Assembly: GCA_977016875.1 (NCBI GenBank)
Contig: CDRNST010000031.1
Span: 186,001-250,000, forward strand
Reading direction: 5' to 3'
DNA from: Pavona decussata
Lineage: Eukaryota
DNA length: 64,000 nucleotides
Shown here: piece after piece, positions 19,879 through 41,730 of the stretch
Layout: every line of letters begins with the position of its first letter
How positions within the stretch are numbered: the stretch's first letter is position 1
The notes under the pieces: generated by a model
What the model was told of the DNA's origin: nothing
Databases searched by the model: none
What the model saw: only the letters and a program-made list of their open reading frames with translations
Position numbers and translations under genes: made by a program

Positions 19879-20823
19879 ATGGCAATACAGACCAGACGAA
19901 ATGTTACTGCAATGCAGTTAGACAAAGCAGAAGGTTCCTTTTTTCCGCTTATTCCTCACGTTACACCAATTTGGCCGCCGGATAAGCGCATCGAAAAGAT
20001 GAAGCCGAGAAGATCTACGTATTGGAGGCTTGTCCGCAACAAAATGATCGTCCTGAGATTTCTTCAAAGCATAAATCCGACAATTACAGATTTGTTTCCT
20101 AAAGTGCTGGATGAAGAGGAAAGCGGGAGCAATATTGTTACTCTGACGAAGAACTTTCGAGAAGAGCAAAGGAAAAAATACGAACGCGTTTACGAGATTC
20201 AGATGGAAGCATATCTTAGGGAAGAAAAGAAAAAAAGCATTTGGGAAAAGGTTCGAGACTGTGAATGTGCTACTCATGAATGGAGAACGACGAGAGAGAG
20301 TCTGGCGACTAGGAAGAGAAATTCAACAAACGTAACAGACAGAACTCGAGCGACTGCGAAAATTGATCTTTTGGGCGAACACGACATTCAAACTGCTAAC
20401 AGCAACGAGAACGATACATCATCGAAGACACAGCAAAAGAAATACAAGGCTCAGACATTCAGAAGCCTGAAGGAAGATTTTGGTCTTCCAGTAAAAACTG
20501 ACGAGATTTATTTGCCTCAGATATATGGAAGGAGAAAGGGGGCGAAACGACCAATGAACGACCCTCGCTTTCAAAGGCTGTTAGATGCACTCATTCCTCC
20601 CCAAGACAAAAAAGAAGAAGATTTTGGGACTAGCACGGATAAAAGTCGCAACAAGACCACTGCAGAGATGGAAACTGTTTCAAGAGGCAGATTAAATGGA
20701 AGGAGTTTGCACGAAAAATGGAAGGAAACCACCGCACCGATGAATATTCGCAAGAATTCAATGCCCAACAGTAAACAGACTAAGTTTACTCGGCCAATAG
20801 GTGGGCTGGGGCACTCGATTTAA
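19879..20823 (+). CDS. Uncharacterised DPRF-motif protein (cluster gene 3), 314 aa
   Basis: Long ORF with aatATGG start. Motifs VTPIW, YWRLVRNKMIVLRFL, YLPQI, NDPRFQRLLDALIP, RKNSMP. Confidence 0.82.
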   Translation: MAIQTRRNVTAMQLDKAEGSFFPLIPHVTPIWPPDKRIEKMKPRRSTYWRLVRNKMIVLRFLQSINPTITDLFPKVLDEEESGSNIVTLTKNFREEQRKKYERVYEIQMEAYLREEKKKSIWEKVRDCECATHEWRTTRESLATRKRNSTNVTDRTRATAKIDLLGEHDIQTANSNENDTSSKTQQKKYKAQTFRSLKEDFGLPVKTDEIYLPQIYGRRKGAKRPMNDPRFQRLLDALIPPQDKKEEDFGTSTDKSRNKTTAEMETVSRGRLNGRSLHEKWKETTAPMNIRKNSMPNSKQTKFTRPIGGLGHSI

Positions 20824-23800
20824 AACCTGTCAAGATTGACAAAAAATAACACCAGTAACAAATGGATGTAAACAATGTACCCAGGAAAAATGTTAATTAA
20901 GGGAAAGACATTTTAAACATGTTGTCAGACTGTTTCAACTGGGCAACAAACATGGTAATTGAAAAAGCGCTGTGGAGAAGAGCGGATTAGAATTTCCAAG
21001 GATTTCTCTCTTCTGCACCAGATCTCTTTGAGTTGGCGTAGCACAAAGAAAAGCTGAACTAACTTATTTCTGACAAACGTAGGTTAGAACCAGGAGTTAC
21101 TCTAAAGTCAAGTAAAACCTGAAGTTTTTTATTATAGCTTTTATCGTTTGTCGCGTAATGTGAGTCACTTTGACATGGGACTCTTAGCTTGCTGTCTGTC
21201 ATTCCTAGGTGATGGAGTCGAATGAGTGCGCTAAAAAGAGGTTTATAGTTGATTGTCAAAAATGACTCGCACTTGTTCTGGTTTTTCTTCATTACGCATT
21301 GTGATTGGTAAAAATAAAACTCGCGCTATCAGCTTTCTCAACCATTCAGAGCTTAAGACTGTACAAATCAACAGTGTTGCCAGTTTTTTCAACAATTAAG
21401 AAGTAAAGACATAGAGTTGCTCACAAATGTTTTCCCGCACTTGACGCTATTTCTCACAATTTCATTTCTGATTGGCTCACTCTATCGTTTTTGTCTGCTT
21501 CGAGCAGCTAGAGTGATTGTTTATGAATGTACAACACTCAACGCTGGGAGCACTCTGTATCGCAGCTGCTTTTTAGTGATTGGTTCATTTCTGTTCTCGA
21601 TGTGGTTAATGATGCTAGGAGAATTTCATCTTTCCTCATTGTTCTCACTAGAAACCGCTTGACTGTGTGCGTAACACTATCAAACTGATCCTTTTGCGGA
21701 CAGAGAACAGTCATTTTCTTGTTTATCAGTGTTAAATTTTTTGAGAGGACATTTTATTCAATCGTACATGACCTGATTGGTTATTACATTTTTTTGACTA
21801 CCCGGATGTGACCACATGTCTTTAATTTTTCACTCAGTTTTGGTCAGTTTTGTTATCTCTGAGAGTCTTCGTTGCAATTGTTAAGTGTTTATCGTCTAAA
21901 AATTTGGTGTTTGGTTTAGCCTGAATAGATGCAGTGCACAATCTTGGTTTCCAGGGGCGACAGGATGATCATTTATAACCTAACTTACAAACTTAAAACA
22001 GGTAATATCTTACCACATTTACTTCAGATTTCTAACACCGGAGAGGGGAAGGGCATTATAACTCCGAGAGTGTTAGAGTTATGACCATGAAACATGGAGG
22101 ATGGATAGCACGTCTAAAGATGTTTACTGTGACGTCGCAAAGAGACGTGATACCGTCATATGACGTAAGAATGTGGTCACGAGTTCCAAACGGCGGCCAT
22201 CTTGGATTCGCCTTGTGTTGGATTTCTCGATTTTGACCCAGAACTTCAGAAAACCTCTAAAGTTGAACAAAAAGTAATTAAAACCCATACAAGAACACTA
22301 AATTGATATAAAAAAATGAACGTTACTGTAAGAAAATTTCGAAAATCTGTAACTAAAAACACCTATTTTATAGTTCAAGAAAACTATAGTATAGCAATTT
22401 TAAACAAAGCAGTAGAATTCAATTTGCAATCCATTTTAATTCTCTATGTCCAGAGCCAGAAACAACTGTATAAAACTTTAAAAAAATTCGAATAATTTTA
22501 ACTGACTGGACCATTTGGAGAGTTTCCTTTAATTACAAATGAATATGACTTTTAGCTTGTTAAAGTAATACGAAGAAAAAGTGACTGACAAACCCTGTTT
22601 AACAAAAACAACTTGAAAGAGGCAAATCAAGGGTGGTCAGCAGTGTATCACGCTCTGACAAGCTGAACAAGGATCTCACGCAATATGTTTGGATTCGCGA
22701 TATTTGCTATGTTCTTGTCTAAATGCAAGCCTTTTAATTTTTGTTTGTTTGTTTTTAATTTGTTGCTGTTTTTAATTTGTGTACGTGTATTTGTTCACGG
22801 TTATTCGTTTTAACCTATCACAAAGCAGCATTTTAAGCTTACCCTTGTTTTAAATTTTAGGACAGTTTGTTTTCACTTACTTAGCTTTTCTGGCGCCAAT
22901 AAATGTTATTAGGCAATCTTAATAAAATACCAGCCGTTCGTTCAGCCTTACATCCTTCAAGTTGTTTTATTTAGTCCATTGCTGATCCTTATCTTGACGA
23001 AGATCCAGCTACAAGTTTCTCCTATTTGTAGAAGTGGTCCATGCTAACTTCCATTAAAGATGCTACAACCAGTGACAATATGTTGTTATACTTTGGCCTT
23101 GATAGCGTCTCCCTCCCTTTCCCACCATTCAATATTGTTTAGAAACCGTTACACGCGCCCTAAAAGATGTATTTTTCCTTGTGCTATCCAACATTGCACC
23201 AGGGGAAAAGGGGCGAGTGGTCGAACAAATTATGACATTCGTTGTAGCTAGTCGCCATTTTATATGAAGTGTATTGGTTTTTGTCTCTTTGCGCCGAAGA
23301 TCATCAACTGTTCTCTTCTGAAAGACTTGCCTGGAAGAGAAAACTTACATTTTTTTGTGAAAAAGGATGTTTTTGGAACACGTCATCTCTCCACCCTCCC
23401 CGCCCCCGGTCGCCCACAAAAGAAAATAAAAAGTTATTAGAAACCGCCCTAATGATGTAAACCCATTTAACATGACCAGACATTAAAATATTCGTGTCGG
23501 AAGTTTTGCTTACAACAAGTCATTACAAAGGTTATACATGTGAATGTTAATTACGTACTAGCTGTTCATAATAAATTTAAGGTGTACATTGTTAAGATTA
23601 ATTATTTTCGTCAGTTAATATTTTAGCCAGTTTCCTCCTCACGAATGCTGATTGTAAAATAAAATCTTCAACTGTGAAAATTGAAATCAACGCACTGTAA
23701 ACTGGGTAATATTTTTTTCCTTAAGGTCTCGGTAACGGAAGTTAAATGGTTTGAAGGAAACTTGACACAGTTTCGTGCGTTCCCAAGTAGAACAGACCAG

Positions 23801-23908
23801 TATTTAAGTAATTAAATCGACTTTTAAAAGTTTGCATTTAAACGGTACAATAATGACGTTTACAAAGAGGGATTACTGAACAACGAAAATAAGGATGAGA
23901 GGGATTTG

Positions 23909-23916
23909 TGACGTCA
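23909..23916. promoter_or_regulatory. CRE palindrome TGACGTCA upstream of cluster gene 4
   Basis: Perfect 8-mer about 115 bp upstream of ATG 24030. Confidence 0.4.
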
Positions 23917-24029
23917 TTTGACCATCTGCAGTGCACGTACGCAAGTCAATAAAAGGCCGTACTGCATATCCAGTTATAATCAGCGTTTGATGGAGTTTGA
24001 AAGCTAAGTTGCGTAATCAGTCCTTTAAT

Positions 24030-24749
24030 ATGGCTGAGTTACCAGATTTGAAACCCGTAGTGAGTATTACACCCATTTGGAGAAGGAGAAAGAAGAGAAT
24101 AACATCGTTTAAACAAGCGGCCCTGATGGTTGTCCACTTAATGCGGCTTGGTGCACACACACGTTTGTCAAGTCTTACTGTTGAAACTATGGCGGAGCAA
24201 CTAAAAGAACTCGCTAACGAAGATCAGGAGAAGGAGGAACGGATAAGGAAGGTACAGCGCCTGGCCAAGATTAAAAAGAAAGAAAATGTTGAGCTTGAAG
24301 AATGGAAGCAACACTACTTGAAGATATACAGGGAAAAGTTTCATCGTCTCACGCTGTTCGAGAAAATGAATCGGTACAATGGAAATCACTGGATGGAAAA
24401 AACCACAAACAATGCAACTTTAATGCCTTTTGGTATTGAAAACACAAAACTCGCAATTGGGAGTCCTACGTTTATGATGAACCAAAAACTTGTCACTGAA
24501 CGCAAAGCAATCACACCAGCGCCGAGATCTTGGCTGGCTGAAGATTGCGTGCTGAAACGATCCGATGAAATTGTTCGTAGGATAGCTGTGGTGCCTCATC
24601 AAGCGGACGGAAGACTTAACAGTGGCCATCAACTGACGAATGGTTCAACAAAGGACATTAAAAAGAACCTCCAAGTCACTTCGCTTGGCGGAAAACATGA
24701 TCCAAGATTTCAAAAACTATTACGCTCACTAACACCCATTGGATCCTAG
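24030..24749 (+). CDS. Uncharacterised DPRF-motif protein (cluster gene 4), 239 aa
   Basis: The first ATG is at 24030 (the track start at 23997 is TTG). Motifs LPDL, ITPIW, FKQAALMVVHLMRL, HDPRFQKLLRSLTPI. Confidence 0.82.
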   Translation: MAELPDLKPVVSITPIWRRRKKRITSFKQAALMVVHLMRLGAHTRLSSLTVETMAEQLKELANEDQEKEERIRKVQRLAKIKKKENVELEEWKQHYLKIYREKFHRLTLFEKMNRYNGNHWMEKTTNNATLMPFGIENTKLAIGSPTFMMNQKLVTERKAITPAPRSWLAEDCVLKRSDEIVRRIAVVPHQADGRLNSGHQLTNGSTKDIKKNLQVTSLGGKHDPRFQKLLRSLTPIGS

Positions 24750-25064
24750 AGACTGTTGTACCTTTCACCATGCGCGACTAGCTGCTTAAGTTAGACTTTA
24801 AAAAAAAGCTTACATCAAGGAAAAATGAACGAGGAAACTGCAGCACTCTATATAAACAGAAGAAAGCGCAAACACCTTGCACGAGGAACGATTTTATTGT
24901 AATGTGCTAGATTGAGAGCGAAGCTGAGCCAATTTCACTGTAAAATGATAAACGGACCTACACCGCCGGCGTAACTTGTACTAGCATTGCACCTTTACAT
25001 ACATTACGATAAACAAAGAGAATCTTTCATGGAAAGATATTTTCAGAAAACCTGTCTGTGATAC

Positions 25065-25152
25065 TGCACGTGCGCGTACAGTAGCGCGTAAACCAACGCG
25101 GGCGGGTACAGTAGCGCGTACACCAACACGTGCGGGTACAGTGGCGCGGACT
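25065..25152. repeat. 30-bp minisatellite, about 3 units
   Basis: Variants of the unit CACGTGCGGGTACAGTAGCGCGTACACCAA. Confidence 0.75.
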
Positions 25153-25623
25153 GGTGAAGTGGTCCAGGCGCATAAAACCCGTACTCGGTAATATCATCAC
25201 CAACAATCTGTACATACATGACTAACAAAAGCAGTTCATTAAATAAGCACAATATTCAGTCTAAGCTTCAATTGATAGAGTGGGCTCTTACAAAAGGTTA
25301 AAAGCATTTAACACCTATTATCAACATGCAAATTTTCTTCACTGATTTGTACATATCCTTATCGTGCGCGTTAGAAGAATTGGTTTGAGACATTTCATTT
25401 TTGGTGATCATTTCCTTTATTCTCATGACCTAAATGTTTAATCAAACAGTGATATTGTAAGGAGAAATAACATACTTATCACTGCTTGAGTTTATTGAAG
25501 GGATAAAGCATAAAGATATGTCCCAGGGATGCGTCTCGGGTTTTTTTTCTCTCCTTTTTTTTCTTTTTCTGTTGGGGGAGTGCCTTCCATTTCTTATTTC
25601 AGAAAATAGCCATTTTCAGACCT

Positions 25624-25806
25624 GGTCCCAGTTGTTCAAAGGACGGATAACTTGATCAGTCCACTGGACTAGTCGCCATCCAGCTGATAAAATGTATTGG
25701 TTTGAGCAAGAGAGGATTCATCCTCTCTTGGTTCGAGTAAATTTTATCCCTTGGAGAAAGATTTATCCACTAGATAAAGTTATCCGCTCTTTGAACAACC
25801 GAGGCC
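25624..25806. mobile_element. MITE with imperfect TIRs
   Basis: GGTCCCAGTTGTTCAAAGGACGGATAAC ... GTTATCCGCTCTTTGAACAACCGAGGCC. A related partial copy lies at about 55147-55230. Confidence 0.7.
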
Positions 25807-25925
25807 TGACTTCTAAGATCAATGCCCATTTTCAGAGCTGGCGTTTGCTAACTGAAGTAGTAAACTGAGCTTTATCCGGATTGAAAAATGTTTTTCTCTT
25901 ACTTCTCTTTCTCTCTTTCATCTTT

Positions 25926-27592
25926 TGTGATAAAGATTATAACTACGTATACTTTTCTGTACTCTCACGCTCCCTCGGAATCCATACCCAGTCATGACAG
26001 AGCGGAGGGCAAGGTCAGACCAAACTGCTGATTTCGCTAGCCGATTGTCAGAACTATTTAATACACCGTTATCAAAGTCATTTCGAAACCTACAAATCAA
26101 ATACAGATAGAAAGCTAAATACAGTCGAACCTGCATATAACGGCCCTGTATTAAGCGGCCACCCTCTATTAAGCGGTCAGTTTTCAAAGTCCGGATTGTT
26201 TGCTCATACAAACGCTGTATTTGTTACCTGTATTGAGCGGCCACCTCTATTAAGCGACCGCGGCCACCTCTATTAAGCGACCGCGGCCACCCTGTAGCAG
26301 TCCTATGTTTGTCTTTCTTTGTTATTGTTACCTGTATTAAGCGGCCACCCTTGAATGGAAACTAAGCCATATGTTATTTTATGCGGTATTTGATTGTGTT
26401 TAAAATGCGATCCAGCATCACTATAAAGAAATAACATGTACAAAGCTACTTTAAGCTGTACTCGGCCGTTTAATATAGTTAACGCTTTTCAGATGCCCGC
26501 AATGTGCTGAAGTACATTACCATATTACGAACGCTAAAGAAAAATTTGTTTTGAATATGCTTCACTCTTTAGCGAGAAATTCCTCTTTAATTAACTTGTT
26601 CTTCAGCCATGTGACATTGAACATTAAGTGTAACAACTATGAAATGACGGAATGAGATATTTTGTTGTGAACTGTAAGTCATAGAAATGGAGCACTGTTT
26701 TCCGTAGGAGAGTAGAGGACAATTTATTGTATAGTACTTTTACACAATGTTACGTATATTATACCGTTAAGTTAAAAGTTTGCACTGAACTTTGTTTAAA
26801 GTATTGATCACGTGAAAGAGTGTTGATTGCCCTATTATTTCTTTGCATGAAGTGTTTTTGTATGATACGCCATTAAAATTGACATTAGACCACGCCCAGT
26901 GAGTATTTTTAGTGATCCTGTATTAAACGGCCACCTGTATTAAGCGGCCAGTTACTCAAGTCCCGAGGGTGGCCGTTATATACAGGTTCGACTGTAATAC
27001 AGTAAGCGTATAACTAACACAAGTGCGTAAATCAAAGATAATTTCCCGGTGCTCTGTCTCTCTGCGTAAACGGCGCTAGCGAAATACAAAACTAAACTAT
27101 AGGAACACTAAATCGACTGGTGAAATTAACAACGAAAGCAGAATATAATTAAATTGGTTGAAGCACGCGCACGTGCACGTGTGCAATTTCGCACATGATT
27201 GCGCGAAACACTCCACCTTACAAAGCGTGACCAATACTCGATTAGAATAACTAATACTGAAATCGTTCACAGTTCATTGTTCAGAATTCCGCCTCTCTCC
27301 TCGTCAGCAGGCACCAGCACTACCAGCCTTTGCACAGGTCGCTGAACGGTTACGTATCCCTGACCTTAGTACTTGTTTACCGGTTCACCTGGTTTAGAGT
27401 TCTTATATTGCACCTCCACTTTTCGCACTTTGCCGTCTTCTACTGGCCTCTGACTTGGTTGGAATCTTGAATCAGTACAACGTCACCCACCATCACGTTG
27501 CGTCCCGCTGTATGCCACTTTTGATTAATGATTAAACTTGGGAAGAAATCTCTGGTCCACTTCCGCCAGAACGCGTCGACTACACGTTGATC
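25926..27592 (-). mobile_element. BEL/Pao LTR retrotransposon 3' relic (integrase C-terminal region, PPT and probable 3' LTR)
   Basis: Minus strand reads RVVDAFWRKWTRDFFPSLIINQKWH...VGDVVLIQD...RGQ, then a frameshift, then DGKVRKVEVQYK...QRPVQRLVVL (DUF5641-type). A purine tract AAGGTGGAG is followed by TGTTTCG at 27210. The LTR end near 25926 is tentative. Confidence 0.75.
26122..26994. mobile_element. Tc1/mariner(pogo)-type MITE
   Basis: 24-bp TIR CAGTCGAACCTG(C/T)ATATAACGGCC with 1 mismatch, TA on both flanks, and subterminal TATTAAGCGGCCACC repeats. Confidence 0.9.
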
Positions 27593-27764
27593 ATGACCGG
27601 CAGACTTGATTAGTTCAGAAACTGTACCCTTTGAAAAAGCAACTAGCAAAAGTGTATCTTCCAATGGATGGGTCAGATTTTCCGTGTGCCTATTGGTAAG
27701 ACCAGTGCAAATGTAAACGCAACTTTAAAATGAATGCATCACTTCAAACTCAGCTCAGGCTTTG

Positions 27765-28060
27765 GTGATGTTTATTGTGCTTTCCATAAGTGTTTTAACT
27801 TTTCAGTCCGTAAATGAAATTCTTAAGTGTGACCATTCAAATGAAAGCTGCTTAGCAGTACTTTCCTGTGGTGCTGTTTATTGTGCTGTACAAGGTGGCT
27901 CTAAATTTTGAGTCTGTGGGTGAAATCCTGCAGTATGTCCATTCCAATGAAAGCTACTGAGCAGTACTTTCCTCTGGTGCTCGGTTTATTGTGCTTTACA
28001 AGGTGGTTCTAACGTTTGAGTATGTGGACAAAATTCCCTAATGCACGTGGCCATTCAAAG
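27765..28060 (+). repeat. ~107-bp tandem satellite-like repeat, about 3 units
   Basis: Recurrent CCATTC(A/C)AATGAAAGCT...GCAGTACTTTCCT...GTTTATTGTGCT. Confidence 0.8.
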
Positions 28061-28215
28061 AGTGGTCGCTCAGTTCTGAGAAATGGTTCCATGTGGCGTT
28101 GTTTTTCTTCAATATTTTGGAAAAGAAAGTGATATTTTTGTTAACGTTGCAGTCTATTACTAGTGAGTAAATTAAAAAGGATTGCTGTAACCCCATGCAC
28201 TTCTGGTAGTATTTT

Positions 28216-28848
28216 TTACCCCTTGTGAAAATCTGCGTTTCCCTTGTTCATTATTTTGAACACTAAACGGCAAGTGTCGTTGAGGCAAATGTCTTTAAAA
28301 CAAATCTCATCCCATTTGTCGTAGGCTTTTCTGTTAGAATCCACTAACTTATTTCTATCCGCGTGAAGATGAGTTCGTAAAGGAACAAGTCGCTCAAGCA
28401 GACGTGTAAATCTTGGATCTTGTAACGGATTCCTGTCATAAAGGTAAGTGGATCGATAACCTTGGCGTTCAGTTTGAGTTGCCGATTCGAATTCAAGATT
28501 ACCTTTGTTTGACTCAGTTTTAGTCCATGCAATCTTCTTTACTTCTCCTTCTTGGTTGAGTTGTGGTTCATTATTATTCTCCGTTTCCCTGTCAGAACAG
28601 CACTCCTGACAAACTTGAGAATCAACCAATCCGTCGTTCGTCTTAAAACTAGTATCATAAACATCACCTAAGTGTTGAAATTGTGCGATTGCTGGCTCAG
28701 AAGCGCGTTTCTTCCACGTTTGATCATTGCTGCGGTTTAATTCATTATTTTTGTCGTTTCCTTTTCGATATTTTTCTTTTTCAACTTTGTAGCCTTCGCC
28801 ATCTTTTTCCCGTATTTTCGCCAATGTCTTACCGCCTATGAACGCCAT
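28216..28848 (-). CDS. Uncharacterised DPRF-motif protein (cluster gene 5), 210 aa; possibly N-terminally truncated or pseudogenising
   Basis: ORF with KRASEP and LQDPRFTRLLERLVPL. An in-frame upstream ATG at 28896 is separated from it by two TAA codons. Confidence 0.7.
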   Translation of the reverse strand: MAFIGGKTLAKIREKDGEGYKVEKEKYRKGNDKNNELNRSNDQTWKKRASEPAIAQFQHLGDVYDTSFKTNDGLVDSQVCQECCSDRETENNNEPQLNQEGEVKKIAWTKTESNKGNLEFESATQTERQGYRSTYLYDRNPLQDPRFTRLLERLVPLRTHLHADRNKLVDSNRKAYDKWDEICFKDICLNDTCRLVFKIMNKGNADFHKG

Positions 28849-28955
28849 ACGTATAGCTTTCCTTTACAGTTTGTAAATTATATCTTATTTCGCCATGTAC
28901 TGAAGACCAGAACACTTCTTGACAGATCCAATGAATCAGAATCGAATTTAAAGCT

Positions 28956-28969
28956 GTTTCCATGAGAAC
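28956..28969. promoter_or_regulatory. RFX X-box-like site
   Basis: GTTTCCATGAGAAC, 12/14 match to the palindrome GTTTCCATGGAAAC, 60 bp upstream of ATG 28896. Confidence 0.5.
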
Positions 28970-29875
28970 AAAAACAATTTTCGACGCCCGCTGTAAAACT
29001 GTGACCGTTTTCTAAAATGTTTGGGAAAATCGTATTTTAAGAATCCTTTGTCTATTATTTCCCGCCCTAAGAAAACTTTCGTTGAGATTATCATCCCACT
29101 GTTTAATATTGATAAATATCTTTGGATTTGCTGCCTTGAATGTTTTTCTTAATTGCCTAAAATTCACCCTGCATGCGGCAAGCCATTATTTTGCTATCAG
29201 TTTTTAGAAAAATACTTGAATTCTATACCTTTAATTTTTAGCCGATACTTTTTTCTGTTTATTTTTGAACAATTTTCTCTACGAATTTGAAATTCAAGTT
29301 AGTTTGAACTTGACGTAAGATTGTTTTTAATTACCTTAAACTGAGTTCTTACTGAGAACAAATGGTTGTTTGGAAACATCAAAAATTAAAACCAAAATAA
29401 AAAGGTCGAGTGATTATTTCACGAAAAATCCGAAATGTTATATAGTTAGACTTTATCTCAGAATTACAGGGAGAAAATGTTTTACCAGCTCGACAAAATA
29501 AGGCAAAAGCACATTTAAGAAGCGCCCTAATTTATTATTCCAGACTTTGACAGCCGCCGATCTTTAAGGGTAAAACATTAAGCTTTGATTTGTTCGGTAA
29601 AATTCTTGGCGGCGTTTTGATGGCTTACAGTTTCAGTAACTTTGAAAATCCAACTTTTCGGAAATTATTTGATGTCGGATTTCCATGAAAACACCGCTAT
29701 ATTTGACCTGGCTATTATCCCGAATATTTTTATAGTTGAATGAAAAATACAGAAACCTTAAACTTCTCTATTAGTCTTAGCAAAAACCAAGGCAAACTTT
29801 GTTTTTTAAAAATCTAGAATAAAATGATTTTTTTTTTCATACCTTCTGTTTACAAAACACAGAGAGAAAGGTTCC

Positions 29876-29889
29876 GTTTCCATGGTTTC
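29876..29889. promoter_or_regulatory. RFX X-box-like site between divergent genes 5 and 6
   Basis: GTTTCCATGGTTTC. Confidence 0.4.
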
Positions 29890-30564: not shown

Positions 30565-31077
30565 ATGAAGAACAAGAGGAGAGATGATCGATTCTGCCAA
30601 TGTATCCCTTACGGGAAAATTGAGGCGAAAAAACTAGAGCGTTTGCAAAAGAACAGGCAACGACAAATGTGTACATGGAAGGACCTTGCTCCTTTCAGCG
30701 AACGTCAAGAAGAATTTTTGGCGGCAACTGTACGGGTTAGTAACGCAACTAACAAGCCTCTTTTCCCGCCAATTCATGAACTGCCGTGTATAACAAACCA
30801 TGACACTTACAAAGCTATGTATAATACAGGGAATAGTGGTGAAATGATAGCAGACGAATTACGCTCAAACAGTGACCGGGTTGGCGAAGAAAACAGAGCG
30901 ATTTCTCAGCATTACGGATGTGGCTGTTCCTCGCTGAAAGACAATAATGTCGTGGAAGAGGAGAGTGGGTGCATGATCAGTGAAGCCAAAGGATCTAGAA
31001 ACAGTACAGAGCCACAACCGTCTAGATTAAAACTTCCGAAAATAACTAACTTTAGCTTTGTAAATCAAAGACTTTGA
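30565..31077 (+). CDS. Uncharacterised protein (cluster gene 6), 170 aa
   Basis: ORF with aagATG start. Motifs ERQEEF, LFPPI, ELPCI, LKLPKI. Confidence 0.6.
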   Translation: MKNKRRDDRFCQCIPYGKIEAKKLERLQKNRQRQMCTWKDLAPFSERQEEFLAATVRVSNATNKPLFPPIHELPCITNHDTYKAMYNTGNSGEMIADELRSNSDRVGEENRAISQHYGCGCSSLKDNNVVEEESGCMISEAKGSRNSTEPQPSRLKLPKITNFSFVNQRL

Positions 31078-32925
31078 TAACTTTGAAGCGCTATTGAAAC
31101 TACGTCGAAAATGAACTATCAATAAGTGTTTCAAAGTGCTTGTACAGTTCAAGTTAGAGACTATATTAATAAAAGTGCAAAATATAGAAATATATGGCTT
31201 CTCTGACTGCATGAACTTCAGTATGAAATATCTTGAGAACGTAAGAAACGATGGAAAATAAAGACAAACGCAAAGTAGGAATTTAATTTGGTATATATAT
31301 GATCGAGGTAATTTAAAGACCGCCAGGCGACTTTGAACGCAAATCATTTAGAATCTGGTTTGCTATCCACAAACGTACGTGGCACGTACAAGCACCTTAC
31401 TTATCTTTGCTCTGTGAGTTGTATTTTATTATGCAATAAGTCACTGAACAGAGACCGGAATTTGGGGATAAGGAAAAGCGGATGTGCTAGTTATTAAGGT
31501 TTAAATTGTTCCCTCTCTTTCACAAAAATGCTGAAACGAGCGCTTTATTTTTCAATGGCTTATCACGAAGAGCATTTGTACACAAACTATCCGTGAACTA
31601 GGTAAACTGTCCGACAGACGAGTTCACAGTGAAGCCGGCCGGCTGTGAGAAGTTTGTTTGTACGAGTAAACAAGGTGCTAATCCTTTTCAGTGTCCCAGA
31701 GGGGTAAGACCATCTTGAAAACCTAATTAACGAAATACAACACTCGTGCAATTTTGAACGAAATAGGAGAGCAGTAAAGGTGGTGAAAACATCAGTTTGT
31801 CGTGTTGTTCAACACACAGTATTTCAAGAGCGTTTAACACTCGCCGATATGTCTCTGTTGTGCTTATTAAAACGTGTTATATGTGTGCGCATTGAACATA
31901 GCATTGGAATAAATGTGTATTAAGCTTCCAGGAGTGGAACAAATCAATTTGCAAAATAGTTAAAATACCATCAAGTAATATAGGAAACTTTTATTTGGAA
32001 AGCTTTCATTTGAGTGTAAAAGGAAAGGAACTTGAAAAGAAACCTGATCATGAAGAAATTGCGCATTGTTTTACGCGTCAACGGGAATAAATATCACAAG
32101 GGTACTGTTAAGTTTCCTTTTTAGATATAATAAATAAGTACGATTTACACCCTTAGAGAAACATTTATGAAACTATCACCTGGCTAAATATTTATGTTTG
32201 TTCACTGATACTTCTGTATTCTCGTTCAAAATTAAAACGGATGTATTGTATTAATTACCGCTAAAAGACCTTTTAATAAGGTTCTCTGGTAATCTCGTTC
32301 TCATTTCATTGGCCGTTACATCAAGTATATATAAACTTGTTGCTCTTGAGGCTGAGAAGCATCTTACTTATCATCGACAAAACAACGATGGATCGATTTG
32401 CCGTACGATGGTGTAACACGATAGTTCCTTTACAATCTAATCATATGTTTTCAAACCATTATGCATAGTTTATCAGTTCCCTGGTACACAATAGAAGTAA
32501 TAAACTATCACTGATTACTAAGACAAATTGAGAGTAACAATACAAACACACTGTTTTCGTAGGAGCGCGATATGGCTATGACATACGTAGTGAGTAAATA
32601 ACAAATTATGCAATTAGTTTTTGTACCCAAAAATAGGCGAAAGCTTTTTAGCCGTAATGACGCAAAACGCTTCTTCAACGTGTTCAGTCTCTATAAAAAC
32701 CAATTAAACGTCGTGGCTATGGCTTTAATTGTCAATTATCCCTAACTAGCCAATCAGGAAAGTCATTAGAAACAACAATATTGATAATGTCGGTGTGTAC
32801 ATGTCAAACAGAGATTACGGTTTTAAATTCCATTCACAAAAACACTGCTTTCAGTACAGAGCGAGTAACGTGCAAACAGGATACGTTCCAGTGTTTCTTC
32901 GACGACAAAGACCCCACCATATGCC

Positions 32926-33486
32926 ATGAATTCAGCTATAAAATTCGACCAAGAAAATGCAGATATCGAGAAGAACGAGAAAAGAATCCCCTACAGGCTT
33001 TGCTACAAGGACAGGATAAAAGTCATAAACATTCGCCCGACGAATGAAGATAAAATAATTGACACGACTCGTGATCAGCTCCACGAATCAGACTGCCCAG
33101 AAACACGAGAAGTCTTGCGAATGGCAACCGTTAACTCCGTCGATGCAATTCAAACGAGGGCGATTCACGAGCATTATGGAAATATAAAAAATCGAAGTGT
33201 TACTTCTATGGAACGACGAGCGACCTCAGGTTTATACCTTCCTTGTTTACTGGGAAATAAGGACAATATTCACGCTCCAGTGTTCAATGTGGCGACTTAC
33301 AAGGGATTTAGAACTCAAGAAGACCGAAAGTGTTGGGCTTTTACCAAGACTTTAGAACGTGATCAAAAGGAGTTATTCGGCGGGAAAGAGAAACGTTTGA
33401 CGTCGACCACAGCTGTGATAGACATCTCAAAACCAGCACAGCTGCACTCACGGTACGCCATCTTGCATCCAAAGAGCGCCACGTGA
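32926..33486 (+). CDS. Uncharacterised protein (cluster gene 7), 186 aa
   Basis: ORF with gccATG start and a CCAAT box at about 32750. Motifs RRATS and LYLPCL. Confidence 0.55.
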   Translation: MNSAIKFDQENADIEKNEKRIPYRLCYKDRIKVINIRPTNEDKIIDTTRDQLHESDCPETREVLRMATVNSVDAIQTRAIHEHYGNIKNRSVTSMERRATSGLYLPCLLGNKDNIHAPVFNVATYKGFRTQEDRKCWAFTKTLERDQKELFGGKEKRLTSTTAVIDISKPAQLHSRYAILHPKSAT

Positions 33487-33606
33487 CCCAGTCTATGAGC
33501 TTGACTATCTTGGAAACACATAGGCAACTCAGGATGTAATAGAACTGCAGTGAGTTGTGACTCCTGTAGCAATACGAGTATAACTATGTTCATAGTTGGA
33601 CAGATA

Positions 33607-33845
33607 GGGCCAGTTATTTAAACAGAGTCTAACTTAGGCCGCGGCTAAGACAATCAGTGGGGCTCCAAATCGGTTTAGAAGTGGTTTATTTTAAGTAGGT
33701 AAATAGTTTTCTAGTCTCGGGATGCAAGCCCTCTTGTTACCATCAGCAGCAGACAATGTTTAGATATGACTGTTGGCAAAATTGAAAATGGCTTAGAACG
33801 TGGTTTTGTTAAACACCGTCTAAACTGTCTTTTAACAACTGGCCC
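33607..33845. mobile_element. MITE (PIF/Harbinger-like termini)
   Basis: GGGCCAGTTATTTAAA ... TTTTAACAACTGGCCC, with ATA/TTA flanks. Confidence 0.6.
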
Positions 33846-34114
33846 TTAATGTTTATCCTGTGGATGGTCGGTGAAAGAACATTTTCATGTGACTGATCAT
33901 CGAAAGCCGAAAACTGTCAAGAGGCGTTCACGCAAGAAACTTACGCTGGCTAAAACCCAGGACAGTGTCCAGTAACGCCAAAACTATTGACTTATTGCTT
34001 AAGTTGTAGTTTGATGGAAATCCTCTCCAGATCTAAGGTCTTCTTTCTGGTACAGTTTTTATTAAAAATAATAATAACGATAAGAAACAGTTCAAGATTG
34101 AAGAAGAATGATAG

Positions 34115-34123
34115 TGATGATGC

Positions 34124-34157
<34 letters not shown>
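34115..34157. repeat. (GAT)n microsatellite
   Basis: Direct inspection. Confidence 0.95.
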
Positions 34158-35623
34158 CATTACCATGATAACAATCACGTTAACGACAATAAATAATGAT
34201 AATGACGAACCTATTTCGTGCTATTTTACGTCTATTTAGGTGTAGTTTGCGCCTTACATTATCGTGAATTAAAAGTAAAAATTAAGAATTTTTTAAGTTA
34301 TCAAAAGTTGAGAAAAAAGAAAAGTCTTCAGTTTCTTGCACTTAGAATTGTTCATCACCAGTGCAGTTCGGCAATGAATTTCAAAGTAATGGAGCAGCAA
34401 TAGGCCATTTCTGAGTTGCTCTCAACCTCATTACGAAACCATGGCTAGTTGCGAAGCCTTTCATTAGGACAACAGGCGCACAATTTTGCTCACGTGGTCA
34501 AGGACGATTGATAGTCTGTGTCCGCAATATTTAATGAATGTGTTGAGCGCGCAGTTAAAATAAGACTTCAGGGATTATTTCAGTCTCCGCAATATATGAC
34601 AAATCAGACAGGATAGCGTTACAGCTCAAACCATTTAAAACAGTACAGTGCAACTATCGACTGAAGCAACAGATATGTACTGAGTGGTACAAAGTTCAAT
34701 TACACAAAATTGCGGCACTCGCGAAATATGGTGAGGTTATCTCTCAGTCATGGTCTGTTTTCGATGGCCAGAAAGCTAAAAAAGGAACCGTATTTGTTGG
34801 TTTGCATTTTGGCCCTCTGCCACTTTTTAGACCAATTTTAGCAGCCGTAAAAAACAGATGACCCCGGTCCCTTAAAACTGAGCATCGGCTGAGTGCACGC
34901 AAAGGCTATGCACTCATCACAGGGCGAGACAGATTCGAGTTTGTTCTTCTTAATATATAACCAAAGTTTCAAAACTATTTGAACTAAGAGCAAAGACACC
35001 TTCATCCCCCAAGGCTGGGTCTTGTGGAAGACAACACCATTTTGCGGTAGCCCCGGGTTACTTAAATCAAACTCCTTCTGTTTCCTTGAGATAAGTTTGT
35101 CATGGTACCCTTCTCAGTATAAAAAGCGGCTGGGGTAGCGTTTAGAACTAACAACAATAATAATATAATCTTTCCGGTAAACATTAAACATTGAATTGCC
35201 TTATCGTTTATTGAGGCGGAAATCCCGCGTAACTGAAGTAGGGTATTGGTCTATAATCTGTAGATGGATGTACGACATACACCAAGACAGGAACTTCAAG
35301 AGAGAACAATAGAAGAAACAGCAGCAACAAGGTCCCTACCCTAAAAACAATTAAACTGACAGCTCTATAGCAGCGTTATCCCACTAAACTGGAGATGAGA
35401 CCCCAAAAGGTACTCAGCCATCAGTGACTGGAAGGTGTGAATGAAACCGACCTAAAATGTCCTATTAGGCTCAGACTTGCCCTTATAAAGCCCAGCTAAT
35501 GGCCCACAAGGTAAACTAAAGTATGTTCCTCTCCTTATAAAACCCTTTAAAAAATCAGCGGAAATTTCAAATCAAAGAAAGTATATTTTCCACTATTAAA
35601 ACATGAAAAGCAAAGCTATAAAA

Positions 35624-36082
35624 GTTGACATCCCATTTGCGCAATTTATCAAAGTCAAACAGGACTACATTTCCTTACTGGTTTTCCTTATGGTCACCGA
35701 TCCCGATTTGAAGAACTAGGAGAAGATTCTACATTTCTTCGTATGTTATAACACTTTTTAATCATAAGTTTAAACAGGCCAAGGATGATTTTAATAGTGC
35801 ATTGATGGGTTTGTAATGCCCTAACCAACTTCCACTGAATTAAAATATGAAGGCAGACTAAAGGTGACATCCCATTTGCGCAATTTAATTAACGTCAAAC
35901 CGGACCACATTTCCTTATTGATTTTCCTTATGGTCACCGCGATCCCGATCTGAAGAATTGGTTGAAGATTCTACATTTCTTCGTATGTTTTAACAACTTT
36001 TTCTTCCGGATCATAACTTTAAACAGGCCAAGGATGAGTTCAATGCCTTGATGGGGGTTTGAAAGTACGCTAACCAACTTCC
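35624..36082. repeat. Tandem duplication, two units with a period of about 240 bp
   Basis: GACATCCCATTTGCGCAATTT at about 35627 and 35865. Both units share TTTTCCTTATGGTCACCG, GAAGATTCTACATTTCTTCGTATGTT and CTAACCAACTTCC. Confidence 0.85.
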
Positions 36083-36769
36083 TATATCAAAAAAGCAAAC
36101 AAATTGTTGAAATTTTTGGAATAATTGCATTCACATAGGCCATGCCATAATTAATAGCCTGTTCCAGGTATTCAGGAGCGAAGAAAATTGCGATGCGAAA
36201 GAATAATTAAAGCGACGAGACCATCCTTCTCGTTTATTAGCCCCGCTCACAATATTTTTCTCCACTCCCTGAAAGCTAGGCTACTGAAGAAATCTCAATA
36301 TATTAGTCATGAAGAAACGGAAAAAAAACGGCGTTTGATTGAATATATTTAGTAATAAAAATCAGCGAAAAATCAAGCGACGTTTTGATATCATCAGTGC
36401 CATCATTATCTAGCTAGGACAGAAGGCCGGCCAAAAGCATGTACGTCATCAGAACTTAACGTATGGGAAAAAGTTGACAACAAATTGCGTGCATAAATGG
36501 AATAAAGTAAGATTAGGTGAAGATAAAATAATTGTTTTAATAATAAAAGTGTTCGTCACAACGTCGTAAAAGTGTTAGAAAGTCTGTAAATAAATTGCGC
36601 GTGTTAAGCAAATAAATTAGCACGGATTTCGCTGAGTTTTACTCATTAAATGTAATCATTTCGAAGTTTATTCCTCCGAAAACCGTTGTGATCATAACAA
36701 TTAAAGAAACCCACACGCGAGTTCTCTATAAATTACAAGGTTTAAGCTTAGGTTTTAATTAAAACTTGG

Positions 36770-37681
36770 TCACTTCCAATGTCTCGTAAACACGGTAGTT
36801 TTTCTTGCAATCTCGTTATCGGTTTTCTGCAACTGGGATATCTTTCTCCGGTTCTTGTCACGGACTTTCATGACAACATGGTAAAATTTAGGATCTCTGG
36901 GATTTAAGTGAGGGATTTTAGCGGGATCAGGCATTTTTATAACCTTTTGGTAAGTAACTCCGCGAAACGTCCTTGTGTTCCAGGATGTGTCGTTCTTGGG
37001 AGCTTTTTCTTGATTCCGATTCAAGTTTTTCTCACGAAAATTTTCTCTGTCTCTTTTTAATTCTTCCTCTTCCAACAAGAACGGAAAACAGCTTCCAGCG
37101 TAAGCGTTTTTTCTCCTCCGATTAAGCCGAGTAACCCACGAGTTGTCATCGATTTCAACCGCGGCGTGCAAAGGCGGCAATGGTGCTCCTATGGAAGTTT
37201 TTCTGTTGTTCTCTGAAATAATATTAAACGTTTTCTCTTTACTCTTAGCCGTCAAATTTAAGAGCATTTGTCTTTTTACCTCAGTGATTGACTCCCTTCG
37301 ACCTTTCAGCCACATTGGTGTTTGATCCAAAACAGAGGCGCGTTGCCTCCCAATTTCCTCCCTCCCAACCGGCTTCACCTCGACTGCCTTCTTCTCTTCT
37401 TGTGCTAAAGGAGGCAGAAACTTCGATAATGATCTCTTTTGTGACTCCTTGAAGTCTCGCTGTCTTTTGTTGCATTCATTGGCAACTCGTCTCTGTTCGC
37501 GTGAAATAACACTTAAGTTTATCTCTAATTCTTTCAACAGGCCAGCGTTGGTGTGGCTCGCATGTTTCAATCCGTACTTGTTCGCGATTTTAATCTTGCT
37601 TCGTTTTGGAAGATTGCGAATTCTAATAAGTTCCTGATTGAGTCGCTCGTCTGCGTTCCTTCTTGCCGCTTCAAAATCCAT
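36770..37681 (-). CDS. Uncharacterised coiled-coil/DPKF protein (cluster gene 8), 303 aa
   Basis: The first ATG is at 37681 (aaaATGG; the track start is TTG). Motifs NAGLLKELEINLSVISREQ...RQRDF, FLPPL, PLPPL, RDPKF. Confidence 0.8.
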   Translation of the reverse strand: MDFEAARRNADERLNQELIRIRNLPKRSKIKIANKYGLKHASHTNAGLLKELEINLSVISREQRRVANECNKRQRDFKESQKRSLSKFLPPLAQEEKKAVEVKPVGREEIGRQRASVLDQTPMWLKGRRESITEVKRQMLLNLTAKSKEKTFNIISENNRKTSIGAPLPPLHAAVEIDDNSWVTRLNRRRKNAYAGSCFPFLLEEEELKRDRENFREKNLNRNQEKAPKNDTSWNTRTFRGVTYQKVIKMPDPAKIPHLNPRDPKFYHVVMKVRDKNRRKISQLQKTDNEIARKTTVFTRHWK

Positions 37682-37896
37682 TTTGACGATAATTAGAAAA
37701 GACCGTTTATAGAACAACCAACACGATCCTGGATAATCCAAAGTATTTTAATCGCGTGAAAACAATATTTGAGAAACTTGCCACAAGCACGGAGTCAGGT
37801 AAAGTTACAGCCCCCATTTCGTGTCAATCTCATATGGTTATAAGTGTTGCAGTGCCACTATCTTAGTGTTAGTCCTTCCAGTTGACCGTATTTCAA

Positions 37897-37910
37897 GTTG
37901 TCTTGGTCAC
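37897..37910. promoter_or_regulatory. RFX X-box-like site
   Basis: GTTGTCTTGGTCAC, about 215 bp upstream of ATG 37681. Confidence 0.45.
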
Positions 37911-38789
37911 CTCAGCGAAGATAAATCAATTTGCTCTGCAGAGCAACAGGCCGTAATTGAGTGACTCAGTTCGACTCAGTCCAAGGATCGAGATTAAGTG
38001 CGAAAATAGAGTGAAGTTACCTCAAATACACGCTCACAGAAAGTTTCGTTTTGCAGTGGTTTCGCAGTCCTCTGGTTTCGGAGATTGTAGACCAACGCAC
38101 GTAATATTCAGTTTTGTGTGTGTTTTTCTGTTACAATGCCTTCCGTAGCCTTAAGCCATGCACCAGCAGTACTCAACAATGCGCGAACAGACACAAAGAC
38201 TAACGACTGGCGGCCGAAAACCGCTGACGCAAATATCACCTTGATATAAATCACAGTATAAGATGTCGCTTTGACAGTTTGGACCGCAACAGCGACAACC
38301 TTATAGCTTAGCACTTAAGTGTCGAAGGACAAGATGGGACCACTGATCTCGGCGTCGTAGAGGGAAACAATCAGGTAAATATTAAAAAACACCGTCAAAC
38401 AGCGGTGTTTATGTGGCTTTGTCCCATGGCTTACATGATATTGTGTTTTATTGTCCGGTTATTGGATAGTAGGGCGACAAATCTCAAAAGTTGTTTGCTC
38501 GATAATAACAGTGCGGGTTTCATATGCAAATACGTGTGTAGTGTATAATACGCATCAGGTAAACATTGTGCGTTTACGTACCACTCGTGAAATATAAATG
38601 CAATATTTGTTTGCGGAAAAATCTGATGACCAAACGTGTTTTTAATACCACTCAGCTAGCACTAAGTGTGTGGATACATAGGTGCGTCTGATTGGCGCGG
38701 CTTTCTCTAGTTCTCCAGACTCGATCGAGGCAGTTAAAAATTAAACGAAAAGCTGTCACTATCTTATGAAAGTGTTGTCCGATAGGCCC

Positions 38790-39370
38790 AGTTCAAGAGT
38801 CAACTGCTCAGTAATTTCGTTTGAATGGTAACACAGTTAGGATTTCATTCACAGACTTAAAAGTTAGAACCTTGTACCACATAATAAACAGCACCACAAG
38901 AAAGCAGCTTTCATTCGAATGGTCACACTTTGGGATTTTATCCATCAACGGAAACTGGCGGTTAGTACCACCTTGAACAGCAGATCTAGACGGCTCAACT
39001 GCTCAATGGCTTTCATGCGAATGGTTAAACCACATTGTACAATATGATAAACACCACCACAGGAAAGTACTGCATACTCCACCGTATTTACAAACTGCTA
39101 GCAGTCTTTCTTTTTACCTCAGATACTAGACGCAAGCGGAAATCTAGAAATTATCCAATGAATGGTCACACTTTAGGATTTCATTCAGAGGCTCAAAAGT
39201 TAGAACCACGTTGTACTAGTATAACACAGGCATACAGCAGGCAGCGCAAAAAAAGCTGCCGCCTGCTTTAAATTTACATGTACTTTAGGGCCTTCATTTG
39301 AATCGGTTCATTGGCTTCAGTTTGAGTAGAATTTCATCCAAAGGCTCAAAAAATACTTTTAACCACGTTG
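38790..39370 (-). repeat. Decayed array of the same satellite as 27765-28060, reverse orientation
   Basis: Recurrent GAATGGTCACAC, GGATTTCAT, CAGCACCAC and GGAAAGTACTGC. Confidence 0.7.
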
Positions 39371-40950
39371 TTGAGTCGCAAAAGATTAAAAGCTCGACAG
39401 GAAAGAAAATCATTTTCCATACAAAACAAATTACATGAATAAAGGGAGAAAAGCCGAAAGTTTGGTTTTAAATTTATTGTCTTCGGTTCCTGTGTCACTG
39501 TAATTATAATTTTATCTGGTATACCTTTCTAGATTATTTGTTTTACCTAAAAGCTGTTTGTTTTGGTACTTTAGGCAGTGCTGAAATGGAATAACTTGAG
39601 CATCAGGCCTTCGTTAGGGGAGGGGAGGAAAATACAAGCAGGGAAGGCATAATTATAAACCCTATTTTCGATTTTATAGATATATTAGAGACTGAAACTG
39701 GAACCGGCGCCGAAGACTGAAACCATTCGGCCGTCAGAACTGAAAAACATCGCCGGAAAAAAATCAAACATAAGAGAAAGATACAGAGTAAATTGGAGAG
39801 GAGATGGTAGAATCTTTACTAAAGCCGGATCAGCGTCCCCAGTTAGCTTGGAATTACTTCGAATCCGCCCTGACCCTCTTACGTTTATACACTGATCTAT
39901 TTGTTGCTAGCAGCTGGGTCAGCTTAACTCTCCATAGATTATCACCTAGTTAGTAACAATCTTGAAGACCAATGCAAAAAGATGAGACTGGTATCTCGTT
40001 TCTGTAATCCAATTCTTTCCAACGACCCTTGCTGAGTCTCTCTCCTTCTCTGCCTATCTCTCCTCCCCTATGTTTTTGTTTTTCCCTCTCCGTATGCGTC
40101 CTACCCAGCCTGATCCCACGACTCACCCCACTCCCCAAGAAAGAAGCATTCTTAATATTGCAAACCATATGCAAGAACAACGGGAAGTAAATTTGGCTCT
40201 GCTTGACTCCCATGCAAAGTGCACCATCTTTCTTTGTTGGATTGTTCTCGAATGTAGATTTTCCAGAATTACTGCAAAATGCCACGCGAGACAGCCCACC
40301 GCGCAGCTGACAAATAGGTGTTTATGAAAAATTCGCACTTAGTTAAAAACAAATAAAAAGGTCGAGTTTTTTTTCACATGGCTAGCGAACTATTTAAGAC
40401 ACCCATTTGAACTTTGTTCTTTAGGATTCAAATTCCTGGTGTGTTGAAAGAAAGAAAGAAAGCTAAGTCATCATTAATGCATGTTAATCTAGGATTCTCG
40501 CGGGACCTGTTAAACTGAAAGAGCCTTTAGAAATGTAAATTATGTCACAATATATATTCAAAACAAAGACCGAGACAAACAAATCGACGGGTATATTTTA
40601 TTAGGGCTTTATTCATCACTTTTAAAGAAAGATATTTATCGTCGGATATCCGATCTTTATAAGGAAACGCAAAAATTTTAAAAACGCTTGAGAGGCTGAG
40701 CGATCAAGAGTTTGTCAACGCAACGTTGGTTTTTGTATTCATAAACCTCTAGACAGAAGGATTGGGTTTCGTAATACAACAACAAAACGGAAAGCAATTT
40801 GTCACTCGTATCCACTAATGCGGGACGGAATTCGAAGATTTTAGCGAAGTTGGATTGTTGGGTCTGTGGAAGGGATTTTGGCTCGTACACGCAAGCTGTT
40901 ATAGACGAATCGAGACCGATTTTTACTTGTTTAAAGGACATTTATTGAAG

Positions 40951-41730
40951 ATGAGTGTTAGTTCTTCAAGGTGTCCACTGATTCGAATCAGCAAAACTGG
41001 CGAAATGAGGCTCAAAAACAAAGTTGGAAACGCAATACTGAAAGAGAACGCGTACGAAGACCGCGCTCTGAACACAACGCTGGACACCCTATCTAGACAT
41101 CAGTTCAGGCAGGATAAATACATGACTTACAGGCAGCTAGAGTTTGCCACGAAGCAGGTCTCCGCTTCAGAAGAGAGACCTAGGACAATGAATATGGAAA
41201 GTAAACATTCTCAATCTAGCGAGCAGAGTTTACCTCCCATAGACTCACTGCGAAGGTCGAATGTAGTGGCTCCGAATATGGAGGAAAGACGTTCAAGTCA
41301 CACCGCAGAGGCGGGAGGGAACAATAAGGCGAAAGGACGGTGGGAAAAGGCGATAACTCTTGTTCGACTAGCAGTACAGAACAGACCGGCTAAAGACTCC
41401 AGTGGCAAGGCTACAACTCAGCATAGAAAAATCTCTGGAATTCATGAGATACATTCGAAGGACATGAACGCGAACCAACTGCCCCCAATAAACCCTCGTT
41501 GCGAAGGAGGACCCAGAGAACCTTCTTCTGTAAAGGGACCCCTGCGAAAACAGCCGAGTTTGCCAGAAATGCTTAAGGTTTCGAGGGAAAAATCGCAAAA
41601 CGGCCTCAAGGATCCTAGGTTTATGAAACTAGAGCAGTGTTTGAGCGAAACGAGGAGTGCACGTGACGGAAAACATCGAAAGAATTCAAGAACGAATCCA
41701 CTGCATGACAGAATTCGTTATACGCGCTGA
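40951..41730 (+). CDS. Uncharacterised coiled-coil/DPRF protein (cluster gene 9), 259 aa
   Basis: The first ATG is at 40951, just after a putative acceptor (tttacttgtttaaag|). Motifs NAYEDRALNTTLDTLSRHQ...RQLEF, SLPPI, RWEKAITLVRL, QLPPI, RKQPSLP, LKDPRFMKLEQCL. Confidence 0.83.
   Translation: MSVSSSRCPLIRISKTGEMRLKNKVGNAILKENAYEDRALNTTLDTLSRHQFRQDKYMTYRQLEFATKQVSASEERPRTMNMESKHSQSSEQSLPPIDSLRRSNVVAPNMEERRSSHTAEAGGNNKAKGRWEKAITLVRLAVQNRPAKDSSGKATTQHRKISGIHEIHSKDMNANQLPPINPRCEGGPREPSSVKGPLRKQPSLPEMLKVSREKSQNGLKDPRFMKLEQCLSETRSARDGKHRKNSRTNPLHDRIRYTR

Follow-up and report, generated by a model that had tools for sequence, protein, structure and literature searches.

Conserved helical motifs in paralogous disordered proteins are a common and unsurprising kind of object. 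The closest described systems to the one reported here include two short motifs. The centrin-binding triad, W1xxL4xxxL8, is found in XPC and, reversed, in Sfi1 (PMC3871271), and the paxillin LD motif has the consensus LDXLLXXL (PMC2572193, PMC2150668). Here, we analyzed a 64-kb stretch of the 602-Mb genome of Pavona decussata (contig CDRNST010000031.1, positions 186,001 to 250,000; referred to as the window), with a G+C content of ~39%. Between ~12.9 and 54.4 kb, the window contains a row of long open reading frames (ORFs) with basic products (isoelectric point [pI], 8 to 10.5; Lys plus Arg, ~20%), several of which match complete annotated proteins. Homologues of the window ORFs were found in the stony corals Pocillopora, Desmophyllum, Acropora, Montipora, Oculina, and Stylophora and, for one gene, in Nematostella. 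Four of the ORFs (genes 1, 2, 3, and 5; Table 1) carry a block of the form DPRF-x-x-L-x-x-x-L, usually followed by [VIT]-P. On the sequence evidence, the sharing of this block is best explained by common descent, the four genes being diverged paralogues.

Like the centrin-binding motif, the DPRF block would be a short amphipathic helix with key hydrophobic residues at i, i+3, and i+7 within an otherwise unstructured sequence; both leucines of the centrin motif, at positions 4 and 8 on the helix, are invariant in the DPRF family, and a helix is predicted there. Unlike centrin targets, the DPRF proteins have an invariant Phe as the anchor, never Trp, preceded by an invariant Asp-Pro-Arg, and they showed no sequence homology to XPC or Sfi1. 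The likeness to paxillin LD motifs lies in a leucine-rich helix of 8 to 10 residues that would serve as a docking module in a disordered region, and the F-x-x-L-L-x-x-L of genes 1 to 3 matches the LD hydrophobic spacing 0, 3, 4, 7 (many gene 1 orthologues read F-E-R-L-[LM]-x-S-L). This spacing is also present in three further Pavona ORFs described below (L007, L008, and L010), and gene 5 has E or Q at position 4. The Asp at position 2 of the LD motif is absent, being replaced by E/Q in gene 1, Q/K in gene 2, T in gene 3, and M/L/Q in gene 5. The DPRF block also differs from LD motifs in its basic position 3 and its single copy per protein, and no homology to paxillin was detected. Because the centrin Trp and the LD Asp are missing, both resemblances are analogies and not memberships, and no tie of the family to a known system or pathway was found.

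A preliminary description of this locus had proposed that five neighboring proteins share the motif in their C-terminal thirds. All five strings are present, with DPRF at 20560 (+), 24699 (+), 28419 to 28408 (-), and 41611 (+) and DPKF at 36895 to 36884 (-), and all lie in long ORFs, at 69 to 94% of the ORF length. The motif is common to genes 1, 2, 3, and 5; the fifth case, gene 4, did not hold up, as detailed below. The four DPRF copies were correctly judged not to be random. At the DNA level, the DPRF pattern had 6 matches versus 0.74 expected, a count reached in none of 100 shuffles; 2 of the 6 encode DPSF, in short frames. At the protein level, the 12 long ORFs (3,402 residues) would be expected to contain 0.024 DPRF occurrences, yet 4 of these ORFs carry one, and in 5,000 residue shuffles the tetrapeptide never appeared in more than one ORF. 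When the whole genome was searched with the extended pattern, DPRF-x-[basic-like]-L-xxx-L, 41 matches were obtained, 4 of them within this 21-kb stretch, compared with 44 for a reversed control. Since the pattern is no commoner than its control, it is a family signature and not a motif widely used by unrelated proteins. Its codons vary among the four copies (CGC, AGA, AGA, and AGG for Arg; CTG and CTA for Leu), which indicates selection on the protein and not on the DNA. The same genome-wide parity means that single matches to the degenerate pattern are usually due to chance, and to that extent it favors chance or independent (convergent) gain of the motif in unrelated neighboring ORFs. This explanation is nevertheless extremely improbable given the shuffling results for the cluster ORFs, the conservation of the motif in orthologues, the extension of profile matches beyond the motif and to motif-bearing ORFs only, and a second block that genes 1 and 2 share in the same order.

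The motif was conserved in the orthologues of genes 1, 2, 3, and 5. It was kept in 138 of 146 retrieved homologues, and the 8 exceptions were short or truncated models. For gene 1 (38 homologues, all from stony corals; alignment A2), D-P-R-F-[EQ]-R-L-[LM]-x-x-L-[VI]-P was found in 37 sequences, with D, P, R, F, R, L, L, and P invariant; the remaining one is a gene model without that region. For gene 2, whose orthologues occupy the syntenic position in four other coral genomes, D-[PS]-R-F-x-x-L-[LM]-R-S-L-T-P was found in 5 of 5 coral orthologues from syntenic loci. The gene 3 version, D-x-R-F-T-R-L-[IVL]-E-x-L-V-P, occurred in 33 of 34 homologues (alignment A4); D, R, F, R, L, E, L, and P were kept, and the Pro of DPRF was sometimes Q, R, S, or L. 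In gene 5 (alignment A3, which takes in Nematostella), D, R, F, L, and L were invariant in 68 full-length homologues, including those from Nematostella and six more distant clusters, and the Pro was present in 67; only 14 clusters among 1.84 billion representative proteins matched this gene. Among nonoverlapping 11-residue windows ranked by conservation, the motif was at the top for genes 2 and 3, ranked fourth for gene 5, and ranked sixth for gene 1, where it is the sole strongly conserved island in the C-terminal half.

Similarity among these proteins extends beyond the motif. An hhalign comparison of genes 1 and 2 gave a probability of 95% (P = 2.6e-8) over 73 N-terminal columns, independent of the motif; this shared block reads …TPIW…SFK…RF…EERxxKVQ. 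At positions 19940 to 20070 (+) of gene 1, it appears as FPLIPHVTPIWP…KR…F…V…FL and at 24050 to 24150 (+) of gene 2 as VSITPIW…SFK…RL; it is invariant across corals and forms a second shared element of that subfamily. Genes 1 and 3 were aligned with a probability of 84% (P = 8e-6) over 43 columns around the motif. We also searched a hidden Markov model (HMM) of gene 1 orthologues against the 126 ORFs of at least 80 amino acids (aa) from the window and four other loci. Only DPRF-bearing ORFs matched, namely, L010 (E = 2.5e-9), gene 3 (1.2e-7), L007 (2.8e-7), L027 (6e-7), L008 (7e-6), and gene 2 (4e-3). The alignments spanned 80 to 160 columns, and the similarity to L010, gene 3, L007, and L008 reached beyond the motif over such lengths; the gene 5 signal was weak.

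At least four further family members are encoded elsewhere in the genome, on other contigs. A motif profile run against the whole genome (E <= 1e-5) recovered seven members, the four in the window plus C191:1037260, C150:533546, and C46:2811848. An eighth, at C191:1027427, is a 194-aa ORF with DPRFQGLISCL, 10 kb from the other member on that contig. Together, these two (L027, 1027331 to 1027912, and L007, 1037209 to 1038207, the latter with DPRFQKLISCLVP) constitute a second small cluster, and L008 on C46 and L010 on C150 are single members. Possible exon-borne or decayed copies were seen at C188:640121, C486:557867, and C132:3354684. With the family taken to comprise basic, disordered proteins of 190 to 350 aa with DPRFxxLxxxL in the last third, its members are genes 1, 2, 3, and 5, L007, L008, L010, and L027. 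Gene 5 represents the most distant branch. L010 combines a gene 5-like N-terminal "SKTGxM…" module and an LPPI motif with the gene 3-like DPRFTNLMRQLVP.

Gene 4 had been counted as a weaker copy of the motif. Its DPKF instead belongs to a different conserved block, IPHLNPR[DN]PK[FL]YHVVMK. The sequence reads RDPKFYHVVMKV in gene 4 and NPRDPKLYHVVMKA and NPRNPKLYHVVMKV in its orthologues at loci L002 and L005. Across these orthologues, the D, K, and F positions vary (RDPKL in L002 and RNPKL in L005), and the flanking IPHLNPR and YHVVMK are constant; the residues that define DPRF are thus either absent (Lys for Arg) or variable (D/N and F/L). In the whole-genome search, the motif profile missed this block at E <= 10, and gene 4 had no significant match to the gene 1, gene 3, or gene 5 family HMMs. 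By these comparisons, gene 4 is not a member of the DPRF family.

AlphaFold2 models of genes 5 and 3, built with the orthologue alignments, were non-globular. The gene 5 model had a mean predicted local distance difference test (pLDDT) score of 61 and a predicted template modeling (pTM) score of 0.22, with confident helices at residues 24 to 74 (pLDDT, 83 to 94) and 126 to 143 and further helices at 204 to 217 and 222 to 238. The last of these begins at Pro222 of D221-P-R-F. In gene 3 (mean pLDDT, 45; pTM, 0.16), the best-scoring stretch was a helix at 145 to 154, P-R-F-T-R-L-L-E-R-L, which ends before V-P. The remainder of both proteins was predicted to be disordered. With F, L, (L), and L at i, i+3, (i+4), and i+7 on one helix face, an Asp-capped amphipathic helix exposing F1, L4, (L5), and L8 together is plausible in these models. 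The N-capped amphipathic helix suggested in the preliminary description is therefore supported insofar as both models start the helix at the Pro after the Asp, with moderate confidence.

The same models bear on whether the helix might be a self-association or intramolecular element that packs on the long N-terminal helix of the same or another member and forms homo- or hetero-oligomers within the family, instead of docking onto a protein outside it. The F1/L4/L8 arrangement corresponds to a-d-a' coiled-coil spacing, a long conserved N-terminal helix is present in most members (in gene 5, the confident helix at 24 to 74), and family members are co-located in the genome. However, the low pTM values of the two monomers reflect no confident packing, the helix in genes 1 to 3 is limited by Pro to ~11 residues, which is short for a coiled coil, and gene 3 carries the motif without a long N-terminal helix. 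We regard self-association as unlikely.

A second alternative is that one lobe of an EF-hand protein (a centrin or a calmodulin-like protein) would specifically recognize the helix through its i, i+3, i+7 triad. The 1-4-8 spacing of the invariant F, L, and L is exactly that of the centrin-binding triad (PMC3871271), and a calmodulin-like exon lies at 7571 to 7918 of the window. That spacing, however, is generic among amphipathic helices, and all 138 sequences have Phe, never the Trp anchor, at position 1. The peptide has no net basic charge, the helix is not long enough for calmodulin to wrap around it, and the genes upstream of the cluster in Pocillopora are ATP-synt_10 and TMEM107, not calmodulin-like. 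An EF-hand partner is, on balance, highly improbable. No centrin was seen among eight intronless EF-hand ORFs of this genome inspected by eye; a centrin would need joined exons. These eight look like myosin light chains or other EF-hand proteins. The sequence by itself, set against the respective consensus motifs, makes canonical calmodulin wrap-around binding, a PKA-RII D/D (AKAP-type) interaction, and a CRM1 export signal unlikely: the helix has ~11 residues, is bounded by Pro in genes 1 to 3, carries no net basic charge, and has no fourth or fifth hydrophobic position.

Database searches did not link the family to described proteins. In Pfam-A, no family scored above the gathering threshold for any of the five ORFs, for the 16 gene 1 orthologues or gene 5, or for the four extra members and the more distant homologues, so that no Pfam family accounts for these genes. 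Searches of the PDB, axonemal cryo-EM chains included, with the motif profile returned chance-level matches only (E >= 0.45); the gene 5 profile (A3) had no matches, and the gene 1 profile (A2) had one (E = 0.067). Detectable kinship to solved axonemal or other proteins was ruled out by these PDB searches, which covered the motif, genes 1 and 5, and two neighboring genes. We found no paper in the literature on a "DPRF motif" or on the public gene identifiers of the family. In the ESM Atlas, gene 5 had no usable match. In protein-language-model feature space, the nearest entries to gene 1 were the vertebrate testis orphans C10orf120/DUF5520, C16orf78/DUF4638, TEX33, and FAM47E (score <= 0.85). 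These orphans have a similar size and composition and are likewise without known function, but their scores were below the level of relatedness and gene 1 had no hmmscan Pfam match to their families; the resemblance is compositional only.

The explanation that we consider fairly probable is that the cluster belongs to an unannotated, fast-evolving cnidarian family that grew in part by tandem duplication, with the DPRF block as a helical motif that tethers its members to the same partner. The sequence data show that the motif is non-random and conserved at the protein level, that the four genes belong to one family, and that a helix is predicted. DPRF-x-x-L-x-x-x-L is the signature of this family of basic, largely disordered proteins encoded by single coding exons. 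Tandem duplication would have placed four members side by side; their disordered parts would then have diverged almost beyond recognition, and the block would have been held by strong purifying selection. Alone or on binding, the block most likely adopts a three-turn amphipathic helix, with the Pro as its first residue, the Asp as its N-cap, and, in most paralogues, the second Pro as its end. F1, L4, and L8, together with the invariant Arg, may form a small interface. Both binding and a single common partner are what we infer from this arrangement: as a short linear motif of helical form, the block would link every member to one conserved partner. The preliminary description had read the shared motif itself as a sign of a common partner. 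The motif is real, but its sharing is explained by paralogy; because the block was passed down to genes that have since diverged as paralogues, sharing alone does not point to a common partner. The retention of the same F/L/L face and Asp-Pro-Arg in at least eight paralogues suggests the same partner for all.

Several points weigh against this explanation. Confidence in the helix is only moderate (pLDDT, ~70 to 75 in gene 5 and ~55 to 67 in gene 3). Composition can inflate HMM alignments between low-complexity basic proteins. Outside the motif, the gene 5 subfamily is weakly similar to genes 1 to 3 (hhalign P, ~1e-3), and alignments A3 and A4 gave no hhalign match at the motif; the case for descent of the gene 5 branch thus depends on common architecture and on intermediate forms such as L010. 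Evidence of expression is thin, with contigs from two runs that are only guessed to be RNA covering, among the cluster genes, just gene 1.

Nearly all cluster proteins, including those without DPRF, contain one to three [LF]-P-x-[IL] motifs, for example QLPPIYR, YLPQIYG, LFPPIHE, FLPPLAQ, PLPPLHA, SLPPIDS, QLPPINP, KLPKIAR, and KLPPIES. Approximate sites are 16160 to 16180 (-), 20510 to 20530 (+), 30760 to 30790 (+), 37150 to 37420 (-), and 41230 to 41490 (+), and the motifs are also present in L007, L008, L010, and L027. Most DPRF members have one copy 17 to 30 residues upstream of DPRF; the two LPP copies of gene 5 show no variation from coral to Nematostella. Two copies read PPIY, which is PPxY-like. 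[LF]-P-x-[IL] may be a second motif of the family. A bolder proposal, to which we give quite low credence, is that the DPRF helix and these upstream motifs would make the proteins cnidarian-specific multivalent disordered adaptors that are all recruited by one conserved cellular machine. Candidate machines would be, for example, a centrin-type EF-hand protein or a phosphatase holoenzyme. The adaptor genes and that of an ankyrin/RVxF protein would have stayed together in a single microsyntenic block for hundreds of millions of years. If true, this would represent a new class of docking motif with a dedicated reader domain.

The family was traced to cnidarians only. The order [263-aa gene (-)]-gene 1 (+)-gene 2 (+)-gene 3 (-)-[170-aa (+)]-[186-aa (+)]-gene 4 (-) is the same in Pocillopora meandrina, and three further coral assemblies also preserve the order of genes 1, 2, and 3 (four other coral genomes in all). 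Within the limits of a word-seeded search, genes 1 to 3 were found in stony corals only; since gene 5 reaches Nematostella, it looks like the older member. Microsynteny is deep between this coral and Nematostella, in which the 186-aa(-like) gene, gene 5, the 191-aa gene, the 524-aa gene, and the ankyrin gene (53261 to 54409) keep their order and strands (window, 32926 to 54409; Nematostella locus L004, 1360 to 20063; BLASTP E values, 7e-7 to 1e-83). No Pfam family was assigned to the 186-aa gene, gene 5, the 191-aa gene, or the 524-aa gene. A 204-kb contig (L006; ENA ERZ25073802) encodes a distant gene 5 homologue with 29% identity, whose neighbors resemble the 524-aa and 191-aa genes. Both the family and some of its synteny thus reach beyond the sampled corals and Nematostella.

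Table 1. DPRF genes, their motifs, and the gene 4 block in the window
Feature	Position	Strand	Description
Gene 1	19879..20823	+	Single ORF, 314 aa, pI 9.9, mostly disordered; N-terminal FPLIPHVTPIWP block
Gene 1 motif DPRFQRLLDALIP	20560..20598	+	
Gene 2	24030..24749	+	Paralogue of gene 1; likely ATG start at 24030
Gene 2 motif DPRFQKLLRSLTP	24699..24737	+	4 residues before the C terminus
Gene 3	28216..28848	-	210 aa; motif, then conserved Cys-containing tail EICFKDICLNETCRLVFKIMN
Gene 3 motif DPRFTRLLERLVP	28381..28419	-	
Gene 4 block DPKFYHVVMKV	36863..36895	-	Belongs to another conserved block, not the DPRF motif
Gene 5	40951..41730	+	259 aa; N-terminal LIRISKTGEMRLKNKV block, long helix, two LPPI motifs, C-terminal helices
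Gene 5 motif DPRFMKLEQCL	41611..41643	+	

The listed ORFs of genes 2, 4, and 5 begin at TTG (bacterial code), and the real starts are internal ATGs. The gene 2 ORF was listed from the TTG at 23997. For gene 4 (listed ORF, 36770 to 37741 [-]), the probable start is at 37681. The gene 5 ORF was listed from 40855, and its true ATG is given by a 100% identical database protein (P0039). The C-terminal block of gene 3 (28216 to 28310 [-]) is strongly conserved, with three near-invariant Cys residues and a low-confidence AlphaFold2 helix at residues 192 to 201.

There is weak evidence of transcription of gene 1, from probable-RNA contigs of low depth (20233 to 20904 and 21148 to 21533) that cover the 3' half of the gene plus ~700 bases downstream. 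Gene 2 had no RNA contig coverage in the probable-RNA runs or the metatranscriptome. Coral metatranscriptome matches in the window were restricted to a short repeat at 22947 to 23146. Metatranscriptome contigs and probable-RNA runs cover it at high depth, with loose ends at either side, and it is probably a transcribed, dispersed repeat that has nothing to do with the genes.

Database entries for members of the DPRF family are labeled only "uncharacterized," "hypothetical," or "predicted." They include Acropora millepora LOC114965509, Stylophora LOC111343333, Oculina LOC144657056, Desmophyllum OS493_006345 and OS493_006350, and a Nematostella "predicted protein." A conserved but unannotated cnidarian gene family thus gains a name and a diagnostic signature, and the one block of 11 to 13 residues that survives in these fast-diverging disordered proteins provides a well-defined experimental handle.

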